DNA from: Tetramitus jugosus
Lineage: Eukaryota; Protista; Heterolobosea
Reading direction: 5' to 3'
Assembly: GCA_937625935.1 (NCBI GenBank)
Contig: OW569383.1
Coordinates: 124,001 to 188,000, forward strand
DNA: 64,000 nt
Shown here: piece by piece, positions 5,695 through 12,824 of the stretch
Layout of the letters: every line of letters starts with the position of its first letter
How positions within the stretch are numbered: the stretch's first letter is position 1
The notes under the pieces: generated by a model
What the model saw: only the letters and a program-made list of their open reading frames with translations
Databases searched by the model: none
What the model was told of the DNA's origin: nothing
Program-made: the position numbers and the translations under genes

Positions 5695-6429
5695 TTAGGC
5701 AGCCTGAGCCAACGCAACCAAACTCCAATTCAATGCGTCACTCGTGTTCACTTCCATGTACTGCTTCACAACACGCACAGTGTCTTGCAAGACTGTTGCA
5801 GGTGAACTGGCACCATGATTCACTGGGTTGGGTCTTCTGCCATCCAACTCGTACAAGTGTCCATCTTTCTGAACAAAGCAAACAAAGTGCAAATTCGTGT
5901 CCATATCAATATTACCACTGCCTTCACTGGCACTCTCGGAATGTGCCACTTCAACCTTGTCGTCCCTCTCGAGCAACACTGCTCTCTCAGCAGGATCACT
6001 CGAACTGCTCTGATTCATGAATTGACTAAAGAAACCATCGCGATCAAATTCAATCTGATCACTATTGTTTGCAATGGCATGAATGATACCAACAGTACCA
6101 CATGCATTGCCAATCGTCTGCTTCATAAAATACAAGTCCTTGCTCACGTGTTGACCATTTTCGGTGATGGAGAGGTCGCGGGTTCGATTCACCTCTTCGC
6201 TCTCCTTTGTCAACGGATAGAGCAACAAGACAGCAAGCACTGGCTGTGGTACCATCATTAACAACTCATCATCCAATCCAAACACATCTGTAAAGCAGAA
6301 TTGATCCGTATTCTTGACACCTAGCTTTGCAATGTAATTGTTCATGATATCAGGGTTGGACTCAAGTGGAAACCAGTGCTTGTTTCTTCCTTGTTGTTGT
6401 TCTTGTTCTTGTTGTTGTTGAGAGGCCAT
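5695..6429 (-). CDS. UCHL3: Ubiquitin C-terminal hydrolase (peptidase C12, UCH-L1/L3 type)
   Basis: WFPLESNP, catalytic QTIGNACGT, and HFVCFV...LYELDGRR. First ATG at 6429. Confidence 0.93.
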   Translation of the reverse strand: MASQQQQEQEQQQGRNKHWFPLESNPDIMNNYIAKLGVKNTDQFCFTDVFGLDDELLMMVPQPVLAVLLLYPLTKESEEVNRTRDLSITENGQHVSKDLYFMKQTIGNACGTVGIIHAIANNSDQIEFDRDGFFSQFMNQSSSSDPAERAVLLERDDKVEVAHSESASEGSGNIDMDTNLHFVCFVQKDGHLYELDGRRPNPVNHGASSPATVLQDTVRVVKQYMEVNTSDALNWSLVALAQAA

Positions 6430-7004
6430 TGTTTTTTCCAAAAAGTTGTTCAAGTTGTTTTTTGATGTCTCTCTCTTCAGTTTTGGTTTTGTAGTTGTTT
6501 GGTTTCAACAGAGAAAATCTTGCCAAAAATAACAAAAATTTCCAGGCTTTGTTCGAAAGAGGAGGAACATGAAGTTGGGCAACCACATTGGGGAAGGTTT
6601 TGTATTGCTCGAATACAATGGCTCTGCAAGGATCATTTCAACCAAGTAGAAGAAGTGCATGATGGAACGATTGGAATCTGGGCAGGGATAAATATAGGGT
6701 CGTTTTTAGTGGTGGGCCAAGAATGGTTCCGTGGGACGAGATTTTGAAAAAAGAATACTATTTCTCTTCTAATTATCTCTTATGGTGAGGACACCACCAC
6801 GCAACATATTCACCATTCCTCTTCCATAACAAAAGAATCAATCACTTTCTCCAAGAGTATTATCACCCCAGTACAATCTTAAAGAGTTTACTCACAGAAC
6901 AAACATAGCCGTCATTGGTTTCAAGTGCAAGACTCACAAACAATTTCAAAAGCAACAGCTCATACACTTGTAATTTAAAAAAATTGTAAACAAAGCAATC
7001 AACG

Positions 7005-7520: not shown

Positions 7521-7934
7521 AACGAATCGTTATCCCCAATGGACCCATCACATGACATGGATGGAATAGGTCCTTGTTGGAACAGTAAAATTCAAATGAA
7601 CTCTTATATTAATTTGTTCCATTATGGTGGAATCGATTAGCCCAATGTCCAATTGTGACCTACCCAATACAGTTCAATGCTTGGTTTGTGGGGTATGTTC
7701 CACTTCCCCCCATTCTAAGCTGTGATATCATCAACAATTCGTTTTTGGTCATGCAACGATGTAATGGCTAAAATATGTCCAAATAAAGCCTTCCAATACG
7801 AATCTTTGGTTATTATGATTTGAATTTGATGACTAGTCATTGTTTGAGTGCGATTGTTTATGATTGATAGAAGAACTGGTGTCAACAAAAAAGTGGAACT
7901 TCAACAACACGAATAACAAGCAACACACGAACAA

Positions 7935-10700
7935 ATGAATGCACAAGTCAATTTTGATCCAAGTATATTGGTATTCACAAGAGTGAATGACATTCATTAC
8001 TTCAATCTGACAAGTCTCATTAAGAACTACTGCACTAGAAGTGACAAGAAGCCGAAGAATTTCAAACCACAACAAAGTGCAGCATATAAACCAGTTGGTA
8101 TGATGATTGGCAATCATAAATACGTGGATAAAAAATGGTTACATCAATTCTTGCAGAGTGAATTGTGCTCAGTTCGTGATTCATATATAAGCTATCTTGT
8201 TTCAATTATGACCGAAAAGTTAAATGAAGATAATTTAGTGAATTCAAACAATTCAGAAGCAACTGGATCTGCTATTCCACTTGGTCATGTAGACATGAAG
8301 AAGTTATTCAATTTAAACTGTGCCAAATGTAACAATCATACTGTATCACCAACGAGCGGCAGAAGACCTTACAAATTAGTTAAAGAAATGGATGATGCAG
8401 GTCATAAAAAACAAACAGTTACTCGTTTGATGTGCGGTGTCGTTGAACTTTTAGAGTCGAATGGCCAATAATTGGAAGCCATTCTTGAACTATATTTTCA
8501 ATATCATCCAGAAATTTTCTATAAGATCATCGATAGTTTCATCAGAGATCAAACTGGAAAGGTGTCCAAACGATCCAATAGGTATTCAACTATCAACCAG
8601 ATTTTGAAAGAAGCAAATCCACTAAGAACAGATAAGTTTTCAATTTTGTATATGAAAGACCATTATATGATCAGCGATGGTTTACTGCAGGGTGTTCGAG
8701 GTTATACTAATTTGAATGATATACCTCATGAGTCAACGCTCAAGCGAACGAGAATTAATGTGAATAATGAAATAGAGGAAAAGTATAGTGTCACAAAAAT
8801 TATGGATGGACTACAGATTGAACTAGACAAAGCAATAGCTGATATGCACAAAATTCATAAAAGAGCATTGAAAGAACTGCAGCAGGTGCGTCACACTCAT
8901 TCTGATAATTGTTGTACCAGTTCAAACAAGCACCAGAGACATCACATTCATTCTGCTATTTGTTGTTGTCACAGAGATTCTATGTATACTCCAGATGGTC
9001 CAAGAGAAGTGTCTATTGAAGGAAAGCTGTCATTTGATGGTGGAGCAAACGCATATACGACAATGACTTTCACGCCATTGAACCTCTCTACTTTTGCAAC
9101 TCAATCAAGAGACTCGTGTATTTGCTGCGCCTCGTATGTTGGATCAGAAACTGAGAAGGATGTGGACACCAGGTTCAAGCCTATATTCGAACAAATTCAG
9201 AAGTGGATAGAAAATGGATTCACTCAAGATCAAGTTGAATTCAAGTTAAAGTTATTTTTAGTTAATGATCTGAAGGCTCTATCTCTTATATCTGATGTGT
9301 TCAAGAATGGTCTGTTCTGTCCATTTTGCATGTGCAAGAAAGCTGAAAGACATTTATTTCAAAAGGATCACGCAGCTAGAATGTTGAATATGAAATACAA
9401 AATGGATGTCGTTATTATGATCTGTATTCTACATTTGAAGATGAGAACTGTATGCAATCTTCTGTCACAAATTCTGTTGAGATCTCGTGAGGAGCAACCA
9501 TTGCATGAGCAGCTGAAAGAGAACATCAGAAAGTTAAATGGATGTTCGCAGTTTGATTTTCGTGCTCGAGAGAATGATCCAGATGATGATGACTTCGATC
9601 AGAGCAACATCAAGTTACCATATCTGAATGGCAGTCAAGTGAATGAGATTCTTCATAACTTTGAGAGTGTGCTGGATGGTATTGCAGATCCAGCGGAGCT
9701 TACAATCTGGAAAATTCATCGATATGTTATGTACAGATATGTAGAGGCATCTAGCAAAGAGATTGAAGAGTTAGACATGGAGCTTCTGCAGCAACTGCTC
9801 AAAACACTCGGAAGTCTCCTCAGATTCAGATATCCAGCGAGCAAATTTGCCTATTACTTTCATATTATGATCAAACATTTGCCGGAATTGCTGGTGCAGC
9901 ATGGATCTTTGTGCAGATATTCGAATGAAGGAACAGAGAATGTCCACTCTATGCACATGAAAGCCAAGACACGAGCTACAAGTGCAGGTGGTAAAGCTGC
10001 AAAGAGTGGCGTTGCTAGAAAGACTCAGTTTGAGCAAACATTCTATCAAGGCCTCAGAAAGATATATCTACCAGCACAGCATGAACATATAAAGTGGCTG
10101 GGCAAACACTCTGAATATATGGAGCCTATAGATGATAATGGTAACAGCGATGACGAATTCGTTGATGAAACAGATGAAACTAACAGCAAAAAGAAGAAGA
10201 ATGATCCACGAAAGCTCCTATTGAACAAATTGGAGAACTGGAAATTGATTGTACTACTGGATTTGCTCCAGATGGGTGATGATATAGAGGGATATATGCA
10301 ACAATATGTATCTGAACTACCACAATCAACAGAGAAGGCATATGTACCAATTGGAAACAGTACCAGCATTGATTCGTCTCAACAGAATGGCCCTATTCCA
10401 GAAATGAATAATCCATTTGTTCCACAGATGCCACCACAATTCCAGCAGCAGTATCCATTGATACAATACGGATCTCAACAGTACTCAACACAGCAGTTCC
10501 AGCCACAACTTGCACCAGTTGTGCAAGAGCAACAACAGTTCCAGCCACAGTATCCATTGTATGTGACAACTGACAATAACTCTAATAAGAGGCAGAGAAT
10601 TGATCCAGATTTGATGAGAAACACACGTGCGTATAGTGGAGCTAATGATTCTTTCCTACAGACGCTTATTGGCAACATCAATAATGCTCGAAGTGTATGA
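7935..10700 (+). CDS. RAG1/Transib-like DDE transposase (~920 codons) interrupted by one in-frame TAA at 8469..8471 (possible pseudogene)
   Basis: ORFs 7935..8471 and 8472..10700 are one frame. Motifs in RAG1 order: SGRRPYKLVKEM (NBD/GRP-like), KLSFDGG (D, 9036), LVNDLKAL (D, 9267), FCPFC, CILHLKMR, YYFHIMIKHLPELLVQHGSLCRYSNEGTENVH (HxxxxH and catalytic E at 9936; compare RAG1 [31 protein letters not shown]). Confidence 0.82.
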
Positions 10701-10754
10701 GTATATAATTACATTGCAGAAGTTGAAAAATGAATTGTTTACAATTAGTCCATA

Positions 10755-11687
10755 TTATGCAGTATCTATCCAACGATCACAAAATTTGAATTGTGACACT
10801 TGAGAGTACTTGCATGTAACTCTATCATCTTCTTCATTAATAATTAATACAATGGATTGGTACATGGATCTCATTTCTGCACTCCAGTCAACAACATTTC
10901 CATGATCACGAATGTGCCATCTGGATCCAAAATCAGGAAGAGTATTATTGAATCTATAATAATGCTTTGTGACATTCACTCTCACTCCATCTCTGATTGG
11001 GTGGAAAACTTTGGTTGTATGCTTACAATTGCTCTGTAGAGACATAAAATAATTGAACAGATAAAATGGACATTGACCTAGATGTAGATTGGTTCCATTC
11101 TTCGCAAAGCCAGGTTGCAATCTATTATTAAGGATCTTGGTTGCTGAACCTAGAAATTCTTGGATTCTGTGACAATCATACAATTTCTCAAACTCACCAC
11201 GAGTAATATTACATGCAGTGTTCTCTGGTTGAAAACTAATAGACTGGGTACGTGCTTGCTTCACTCTGCTCTTCAATACTTTCAAAGCACATGACACTTC
11301 AAAATATGCAATGCTTGGATCAGAATCATCAGATTGCTCAATGTAATTATCAATCTTCTGCTCAACAGATGCCATATTAACAGGTGCAACAATAGAAATT
11401 GGAACTGCACTTGATGCTGTATTATGGTTCATAGAATTGTTCAGGTACATGGAAGCGAAATATTGTTTGTAGTGAACTAGTTCCAGTTGGAGTTTGGTGA
11501 CACTTTGGTTCAATAACTGAATCTTCTTATTTGCAATTGATAGCTTCTCTTCAAGAATCTTCGTTGTAGTACGACACACAATCTTCTGTGATGTAGAGGA
11601 GACACGACCTCCCACACCCTTGCTCCTATGATCACCATTCAAGTTGGAAGTGTGTGCAAATGTCGTAGTGCTGTTTGATGCTGTCAT
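10755..11687 (-). CDS. Orphan protein (~310 aa from first ATG) convergent with the transposase; N-terminal coiled coil and globular C-terminal domain
   Basis: Long open frame. ATG at 11687 is preceded by the CAACA-rich leader seen before other genes here. Heptad segment LEEKLSIANKKIQLLNQSVTKLQLEL; no Kelch or PHD pattern visible. Confidence 0.7.
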   Translation of the reverse strand: MTASNSTTTFAHTSNLNGDHRSKGVGGRVSSTSQKIVCRTTTKILEEKLSIANKKIQLLNQSVTKLQLELVHYKQYFASMYLNNSMNHNTASSAVPISIVAPVNMASVEQKIDNYIEQSDDSDPSIAYFEVSCALKVLKSRVKQARTQSISFQPENTACNITRGEFEKLYDCHRIQEFLGSATKILNNRLQPGFAKNGTNLHLGQCPFYLFNYFMSLQSNCKHTTKVFHPIRDGVRVNVTKHYYRFNNTLPDFGSRWHIRDHGNVVDWSAEMRSMYQSIVLIINEEDDRVTCKYSQVSQFKFCDRWIDTA

Positions 11688-12257
11688 TGCTTCGTTTGTG
11701 TGTTGTTTTGTTGTTGTTGCTGTTATTATGAGTCTTGCATCATCTTCATTTGTATCGTTGTTTATGGATGATTTTCGTGTTTGGAAGGCGGATAACTTAC
11801 AAAAATAGCGAAGAGAACAATTTACTCTAGTCTCATAGTCTGTGCTTTGAGTACATATGCCACTGGATTGCGTATCTCCTCCGCCGCACAAACCTTGGGC
11901 AGGGGATGCGTAGTGACATGCATGATTTTTCTCCTCATTTCACATTTCTACTTCCACAGCTGATCCTAGAAAATGAAACACGAACATCCGCACACAGCGG
12001 TCACTGTCACAGCACCTACTTGAGTGGTGGGGTAGGACAGGAAAGGAAATGTGCTCAACAAAACAAGGCTCACGCTGACAAGCTCACGAACAAAGATACT
12101 TCTCAAACAAAGCAATCACATCTACACTTGTGTCTAGTATCACCATTCACATCATCACTTTCTGCATTTGTGAGTTTTCAGAACGAGCAGTGTGTCCCAC
12201 TCAAATCTCAAGATTGATTTTAGGTTATTGTTGTTACTGTCGACATACCACTACAAA

Positions 12258-12824
12258 ATGATTGGAAAGCAACACAAGAAGAAAGGCAGCCAAGTAAAGA
12301 GAATTGCCCAGCAAGATATTCGCCTCCACCCAAATCCAAAGTGGATTGCCTATGAACCCACCACACCCACCAGTGCATCAAGTTCTGAGGCAGCAAGTGA
12401 TGAGGTAGGAGCAGCAGCCGTAAAGAAGAGGAGTCCTTCTTCATCCCCAATTGTACAAACAAGAGAACGTAGGTCTCCTTCTTCATCTACCGAGGTGACT
12501 GAGATTCGAGTAAGGTCGAATCATTTTGGTTCGAGCTCTCCCTTTCACCGGGGCAGGGAACTAGGGGAATTTGAGCGTGGGCAGCAGGTATTATCGACAA
12601 GAAACGAAAGTCAACAAGTTTACTTTAGAGACACCACATATCAGCAAACCACTTCGCCCAACAGAAAACAGAGTGAGAACAGGATGCCCATGAGGTATTT
12701 ACCCTCCCTAGAGCTCGAGAGAAAGAAGAGAAATTGTGAGAGAATATCGATTCCAAACCTCTTGTGCCACGAGTCAACAGCACCACATGACATAAATGAT
12801 GGAGAACATCACATGCCATGGTGA
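12258..12824 (+). CDS. Small disordered, probably nuclear protein with a C-terminal RISIPNLL motif
   Basis: ATG at 12258, basic N-terminus (KQHKKK), Ser/Pro-rich body, and RKKR plus ISIPNLL near the C-terminus. Confidence 0.55.
   Translation: MIGKQHKKKGSQVKRIAQQDIRLHPNPKWIAYEPTTPTSASSSEAASDEVGAAAVKKRSPSSSPIVQTRERRSPSSSTEVTEIRVRSNHFGSSSPFHRGRELGEFERGQQVLSTRNESQQVYFRDTTYQQTTSPNRKQSENRMPMRYLPSLELERKKRNCERISIPNLLCHESTAPHDINDGEHHMPW

Follow-up and report, generated by a model that had tools for sequence, protein, structure and literature searches.

A mobile two-gene DNA transposon with a predicted RAG1/Transib-type transposase, inserted without target-site duplication in Tetramitus jugosus

The window analysed here is a stretch of 64,000 nucleotides from the heterolobosean Tetramitus jugosus (C40:124001-188000 of an assembly, G000, of 26,350,207 bp in 56 pieces), and the element in question occupies its positions 7665-11870 (plus strand), where a transposase gene and a second gene on the opposite strand converge between short terminal inverted repeats (TIRs). 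A preliminary description, made from the sequence alone, had outlined 7935-11687 as a RAG1-like gene pair; that segment lies inside the real unit, which is larger. The unit is a real, mobile two-gene DNA transposon of 4,206 bp. Five contigs or chromosomes of the assembly carry both open reading frames (ORFs) at 100% identity, the five copies agree over exactly 4,206 bp before giving way to unrelated flanks, and an empty allele in public reads skips exactly the same bases. These identical copies with different flanks, together with a fold match to RAG1 and Transib, mean that the segment is not a chance arrangement.

The transposon and its interrupted transposase

The element ends in a 9-bp imperfect inverted repeat of the CAA..TTG type. 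The left repeat, CAATACAGT (7665-7673, plus strand), was defined by comparison of copies, and the same nine bases start a related metagenomic element (L048); the right repeat, which reads CAATCCAGT on the minus strand (11862-11870), matches it at 8/9 positions. Left-end fragments of 398 bp and 35 bp are found on C20 and C3, respectively, and loose ends in public reads (from the source runs as well as a soil metagenome from a separate study) reveal additional flanks. A genome-wide search with an 11-base TIR pattern gave 215 matches without visible pairing. The segment is AT-rich and poor in long homopolymers, as first described: its GC content is 37.5% vs 40.9% elsewhere in the window, A/T runs of at least 7 are absent (vs 0.35 per kb) and trinucleotide runs are few.

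The transposase frame, read from 7935, carries the expected motifs in the order originally proposed, from GRRP to SNEGTEN. Its N-terminal piece (7935-8471, plus strand, 178 aa) contains a weakly KilA-N-like region that may bind DNA, one CxxC (8319-8330) and a GRRP segment (8358-8369) resembling the nonamer-binding domain (NBD), and aligns with the start of the intact relative P0002, its N-terminus, at 28% identity across 173 aa (E 4e-25). The likeness to KilA-N is a lead only (Atlas 0.85; Pfam E 0.009 in one relative). The catalytic piece (8472-10700, plus strand, 742 codons, first ATG at 8652), which has a low-complexity tail, holds the putative catalytic Asp of SFDGG (9030-9044, D at 9036-9038) and of NDLK (9264-9275, D at 9267-9269), the CxxC in CPFC (9318-9329), the His of ILHLK (9426-9440), HxxxxH (9861-9878, within FHIMIKH, 9858-9878) and the Glu of SNEGTEN (9921-9941, E at 9936-9938), all of which are invariant or almost so among 12 relatives. 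A structural model of this piece (pLDDT 77) matches RAG1, HzTransib and BbRAG1L (E 1e-11 to 1e-6 for RAG1/Transib), which, in line with the original proposal, predicts the RNase H plus zinc-insertion fold of RAG1 and Transib, at an identity of 12-14% to all three alike. In sequence searches, neither protein of the window has a Pfam match, the best PDB sequence matches are to RAG1 and weak (E 0.011 for the window protein, around H..H..E; 0.003-0.01 overall), and the Pfam matches of 12 family members incline slightly towards Chapaev/DUF1280, with four matching it (best E 6e-5; the window protein is not one of them) and one matching RAG1. No relative of the transposase was found in viral contigs. 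A His/Cys-rich insertion of ~30-40 aa before the first catalytic Asp (window 8885-8990), disordered in the model, is missing in all relatives.

This frame had been taken for a single one of ~920 codons, which it is not, because an in-frame TAA at codon 179 (8469-8471, plus strand), common to all five copies, splits it into 178 and 742 codons. The intact relative P0002 (827 aa, 47% identical) is uninterrupted here and has Asn (AAC) in the position of the stop, and long intact ORFs are likewise present in relatives on C26, C4 and C16. In runs X1 and X3, contigs that cover the TAA show no alternative letter among the variants listed and no splice joint. An intron over the stop was considered and rejected: frame-keeping GT-AG pairs are present but would remove residues that align with intact relatives, and the contigs lack the joint.

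Judged from these alignments, the simplest reading is that the stop is probably a nonsense mutation in a non-autonomous family, the five copies of which most likely moved in trans, plausibly with the help of a sister element. Reads of X3 and X4 contain pieces of both genes of such an element, ~86-88% identical, at low depth and missing from the assembly, which makes it a candidate helper. (The depth pattern of X3 resembles that of RNA, although this run is not on record as such.) It is unlikely, by comparison, that the five copies are autonomous owing to readthrough or bypass of the TAA – by re-initiation at ATG 8652 or through two cooperating polypeptides – with the stop limiting the dose of transposase. 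In its favour, the stop is shared by all copies, the assembly has no closer intact copy (best other 32% identical) and the break falls between the DNA-binding and catalytic parts. Against it, the ORF of the relatives is unbroken and encodes Asn at this position, no splice joint was seen, re-initiation would cost 60 conserved residues and the reads do hold pieces of a sister subfamily.

Insertion without target-site duplication

At the window site, the element inserted without a target-site duplication (TSD). In public-read contigs of runs X1 and X4, the last host base on the left (7664) is joined directly to 11871, with 4,206 bases skipped. In X1, this joint has a depth of 21.7 vs ~41 locally, i.e. 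half, and one of its records (record 5) is made of 45 letters of left flank and 263 of right flank, which equals its total length of 308 letters, so that nothing was duplicated, lost or added at the junction. The empty allele sits on a haplotype ~8% divergent, the insertion site being heterozygous, and most likely represents the pre-insertion state. Since the copies are identical while the haplotype split is much older, the insertions must be recent. To the right of the insertion (window 11871-12500), the two haplotypes, ~8% different, are also separated by several indels, as in a highly heterozygous diploid.

The five junctions (CTACC|CGTAT, GACAT|GTGTG, TAGTA|AATTA, CGAAA|ATTTC and ATTTT|CACTG) contain no repeat of at least 2 bp, and comparison of left with right flanks gives no cross-match of at least 3 bp. 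Mis-joining in the assembly can be dismissed as the cause of the missing duplication in view of this lack of cross-matches, and because the empty allele pairs the site's own flanks. The copy on C9 (L032 flanks) lies among four short paralogous genes arrayed in tandem; a paralogous site nearby was tried as a second empty site and proved unusable, indels spanning the junction.

The survey was extended to 17 bounded elements, that is, the five identical copies and twelve others delimited by inverted repeats. Eight of the latter are CAA-ended (one on C26, two on JGI/Logan contigs, one in GCA_041937235.1, two in Naegleria gruberi and two in Planoprotostelium) and four, in the T. jugosus assembly, are CAC-ended, so that CAA..TTG termini occur in 13 elements and CAC..GTG in four. 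Ends are backed by a second copy with different flanks for the pairs C26/C32, C16/C50 and C24/C23, and the remaining ones come from the repeat alone. No exact TSD of at least 3 bp was found in any of the 17, and a 2-bp one (palindromic GC) in a single case; older single copies may have lost a TSD, and the strong evidence therefore comes from the five identical copies and the empty allele. There is no fixed target motif, flanks varying among insertions. The terminal CAA and TTG might have been host target (a Spy-like CAA|TTG, or CAATTG), but they are missing from the empty allele and therefore belong to the element itself.

The convergent partner gene

The second gene (10755-11687, minus strand, 310 aa) stops 54 bp (10701-10754) from the stop of the transposase, as first described. 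Its N-terminal half is variable, with a coiled-coil-like stretch, and is followed by a conserved C-terminal domain (10758-11240) of ~160 aa, represented by 115 clusters at 50% identity. The model of this alpha/beta domain (161 aa, pLDDT 95) has no match in PDB, Atlas or viral structure searches, a propeller included, and none of 86 members matches a Pfam family. Accordingly with the preliminary description, which placed an unrelated protein in the RAG2 position, the partner is, on its predicted structure, unrelated to RAG2 and non-Kelch. Conserved polar residues are R189, Q191, K196 (79/86), S274, Y276 (78/86) and R289, and the alignment contains no invariant His, no conserved His pair and no acidic cluster. 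In a language-model search, EndoU/XendoU nucleases came first with a score of 0.84-0.86, below the tool's own threshold. An EndoU identity (His-His-Lys site) was not supported, with no EndoU among the fold matches listed and no conserved His pair. The partner was also considered as an ordinary host gene, which none of the long loci checked resembled, although two of them lack clear TIRs.

The tail-to-tail arrangement of transposase and partner recurs in 14 distinct elements, including those of Naegleria gruberi and metagenomes, and is constant in position and orientation across transposases that are only 23-57% identical. Partner distances correlate with transposase distances in these 14 elements (Mantel r 0.81), and the partner tree follows that of the transposase.

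Several relatives depart from the layout of the window in ways worth recording. (i) A 1,314-bp non-autonomous element on C24 (L045:3002-4315) contains an intact partner gene only; a fragmented copy of it (84-99% identical) lies on C45, and C23 has a related end. (ii) On C4, two intact-looking members of the CAC-ended subclade, only distantly related to each other (L036:3968-7849 and L037:1854-6042), are arranged back to back, with their partner ends towards each other and only 4 bp between them; in the second, the transposase N-terminus is frameshifted. (iii) In a subclade known from N. gruberi (L055:6875-14719) and a Logan contig (L057), the transposase region has a Zn2Cys6-like (Zn_clus) finger at its end, and in the N. 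gruberi copy the two genes lie ~3.6 kb apart. (iv) In Planoprotostelium fungivorum (L056:359-1843), the partner is intron-split and fused to a SAP DNA-binding motif inside a 16-bp TIR. That the family also occurs in Amoebozoa hints at either an ancient spread or horizontal transfer.

Mechanism, kinship and implications

Given mobility, ends, gene pairing, fold and blunt junctions, we think it likely that the element represents an undescribed two-gene cut-and-paste lineage in the RAG1/Transib/Chapaev (CMCT) clade, which inserts with zero stagger and uses the partner as a dedicated cofactor. The remaining steps can be pictured by analogy with RAG and Transib (PMC10629977). A transposase dimer would bind the short TIRs via its N-terminal and NBD-like regions, excision by nicking and hairpin formation on the flanks would yield blunt element ends with free 3'-OH, and these 3' ends would carry out strand transfer. 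Both ends would attack directly opposite target phosphates, as proposed for Spy (PMC4122938), which would leave no gap to fill and hence no TSD. The partner, in the RAG2 position, would be a co-inherited cofactor that most likely binds either the transposase or the target DNA.

Several observations weigh against this picture. Assembly G000 lacks the helper element, and an empty site has been seen for one insertion only. Flanks match by 1 bp in 9/17 elements vs ~5-6 expected, so that a 1-bp duplication in some events is possible, and three of the four CAC-ended older relatives show an unexplained 2-of-3 flank match, possibly a decayed 3-bp TSD. The expectation that the two genes always occur together, as convergent neighbours, was borne out in 14 elements, but the partner also occurs in TIR-bounded units in which no transposase was detected (C24, L056 and L063), and at two loci, L046 and L058, that lack clear TIRs.

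An unlikely alternative to a cofactor is that the partner is an enzyme, a nuclease or end-processing factor that makes a blunt target break or trims the stagger, after which transposase and host ligation finish the joint; in that case the partner, and not transposase geometry, would account for the missing TSD. The conserved polar residues could be catalytic, EndoU/XendoU topped the language-model search, and two-gene layout and TSD loss coincide throughout the lineage. Against this, that score is below threshold and unsupported by the fold matches listed, neither an invariant His nor an acidic cluster is present, and the perfectly clean ends and flanks differ from what end-joining capture typically leaves.

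It is also rather improbable that we are dealing with an ordinary Transib/Chapaev-type element, moved by its transposase alone with a short or variable TSD of 0-1 bp, in which the partner is a passenger with anti-silencing or host-manipulating roles. CMCT elements often carry cargo, such as TET/JBP in fungi (PMC12730594), partner-only mini-elements like that on C24 exist and 1-bp flank matches are in slight excess. Unlike exchanged cargo, however, the partner keeps its place and orientation beside widely divergent transposases, with congruent trees; as for a 1-bp duplication, the match is missing in two of the five identical copies, and at the window site, where it is present, the empty allele keeps both C's, which excludes it there.

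That the element is a genuine relative of RAGL/ProtoRAG, or a RAG-like recombinase domesticated by the host, is very improbable and largely refuted, since, despite the convergent layout, the GRP-like segment, RAG1 as best PDB sequence match (E 0.003-0.01) and CAC ends in a deep subclade, the partner is no Kelch propeller, identity to RAG1 is 12-14%, there is no 5-bp TSD, the N-terminus lacks the Chapa/NZD zinc finger and RING motif patterns, and a multi-copy, heterozygous and broken family is not a domesticated host gene. Of the two-component transposon or recombinase first envisaged, the transposon thus survives, with its five copies and defined ends; 'ProtoRAG-like' does not hold as a statement of kinship, also because the window element has CAA and not CAC ends.

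How then does the element compare with known systems? With the CMCT clade, it shares the motif set and 5'-CA..TG-3' termini and differs by the absence of TSDs, which are 2-5 bp in that clade (PMC12730594), as in the Transib, RAG, Chapaev and EnSpm relatives described so far. Transib elements, which have a single gene, 5-bp TSDs and CAC ends like recombination signal sequences (PMC10629977), share the RAG1-core-like fold, but identity to HzTransib is only 12%, and the present elements have mostly CAA ends and, always or nearly always, a second gene; the window family starts with CAAT, and the CAC of the Transib heptamer is seen in one deep subclade only. ProtoRAG/RAGL elements (BbRAGL, AanRAGL) have in common two convergent genes inside TIRs. 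Their partner combines a six-bladed Kelch propeller with PHD, whereas here it is a 160-aa alpha/beta domain, their 5-bp TSD is missing, no bipartite asymmetric TIR was seen in the element, and its transposase is much more remote than RAG1L and Transib are from each other, their cores being ~26% identical (PMC9435367). Possible links to Chapaev, the transposase of which is DUF1280 (PF06918; PMC3985635), are that DUF1280 is the most frequent Pfam match and that a CxxC precedes the GRP-like segment. The N-terminal alignment, judged by sequence and not by fold, has this single conserved CxxC after the weakly KilA-N-like region and shows neither the double zinc finger of Chapa (NZD-like) nor a RING pattern, and no such partner gene is described for Chapaev in the literature covered.

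The only other TSD-less DDE group in that literature is Spy (PHIS group), which is bounded by TIRs and for which non-staggered joining was proposed (PMC4122938). Spy is PIF/Harbinger/IS5-related, with one ORF and an AAA|TTT target, whereas the present element has a predicted RAG1/Transib fold, two genes and no fixed motif; TSD loss in the two lineages is independent. In PIF/Harbinger (Myb partner) and ISL2EU (YqaJ partner), the transposase likewise comes with a conserved accessory protein (PMC4122938), but the transposase group and the partner are both unrelated to those described here, and TSDs are 3 bp and 2 bp, respectively. We found no published description of this family in the literature covered, which leaves out Repbase and subscription journals, so that an unnamed Repbase entry is possible.

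TSD length mirrors the geometry of the transpososome and is used to define DNA transposon superfamilies, the stagger being 5 bp for RAG, RAGL and Transib and 2-5 bp in the wider clade. The lineage is possibly of superfamily level. Tentatively, it might be a RAG1/Transib-fold branch of that rank, distributed among Heterolobosea, Amoebozoa and unassigned protists, whose accessory protein, of new fold, enables blunt integration at arbitrary sites. If so, a RAG1-like core would have been paired with a partner subunit a second time, independently, and the branch would be the first eukaryotic DDE system to insert without a TSD and irrespective of target sequence. A zero-stagger enzyme of RAG1 fold would make the determinants of stagger testable. 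That a RAG1-like core gained a permanent partner gene twice would bear on the acquisition of RAG2 by RAG1, and the partner could be asked whether a RAG2-like job can be done by a different fold. Assays are feasible thanks to intact natural copies (in N. gruberi, such as the pair of L054, and in metagenomes) and a recently active, heterozygous family in a cultured amoeba. Insertion with neither duplication nor target motif might interest genome engineers, and annotation pipelines that require a TSD would overlook such elements.

Three minor observations complete the picture. A more distant transposase relative, with no partner detected, lies beside bacterial-looking sugar genes on a metagenomic contig that is possibly chimeric (L062:4044-6711). 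Some loose ends in reads consist of the 45-bp left end (window 7665-7709) followed by a few bases ending in ATTG, possibly a 54-bp mini-element, without counterpart in the assembly. Upstream of the transposon, the window encodes an ordinary ubiquitin C-terminal hydrolase (5695-6453, minus strand; Peptidase_C12, Pfam E 1e-63).
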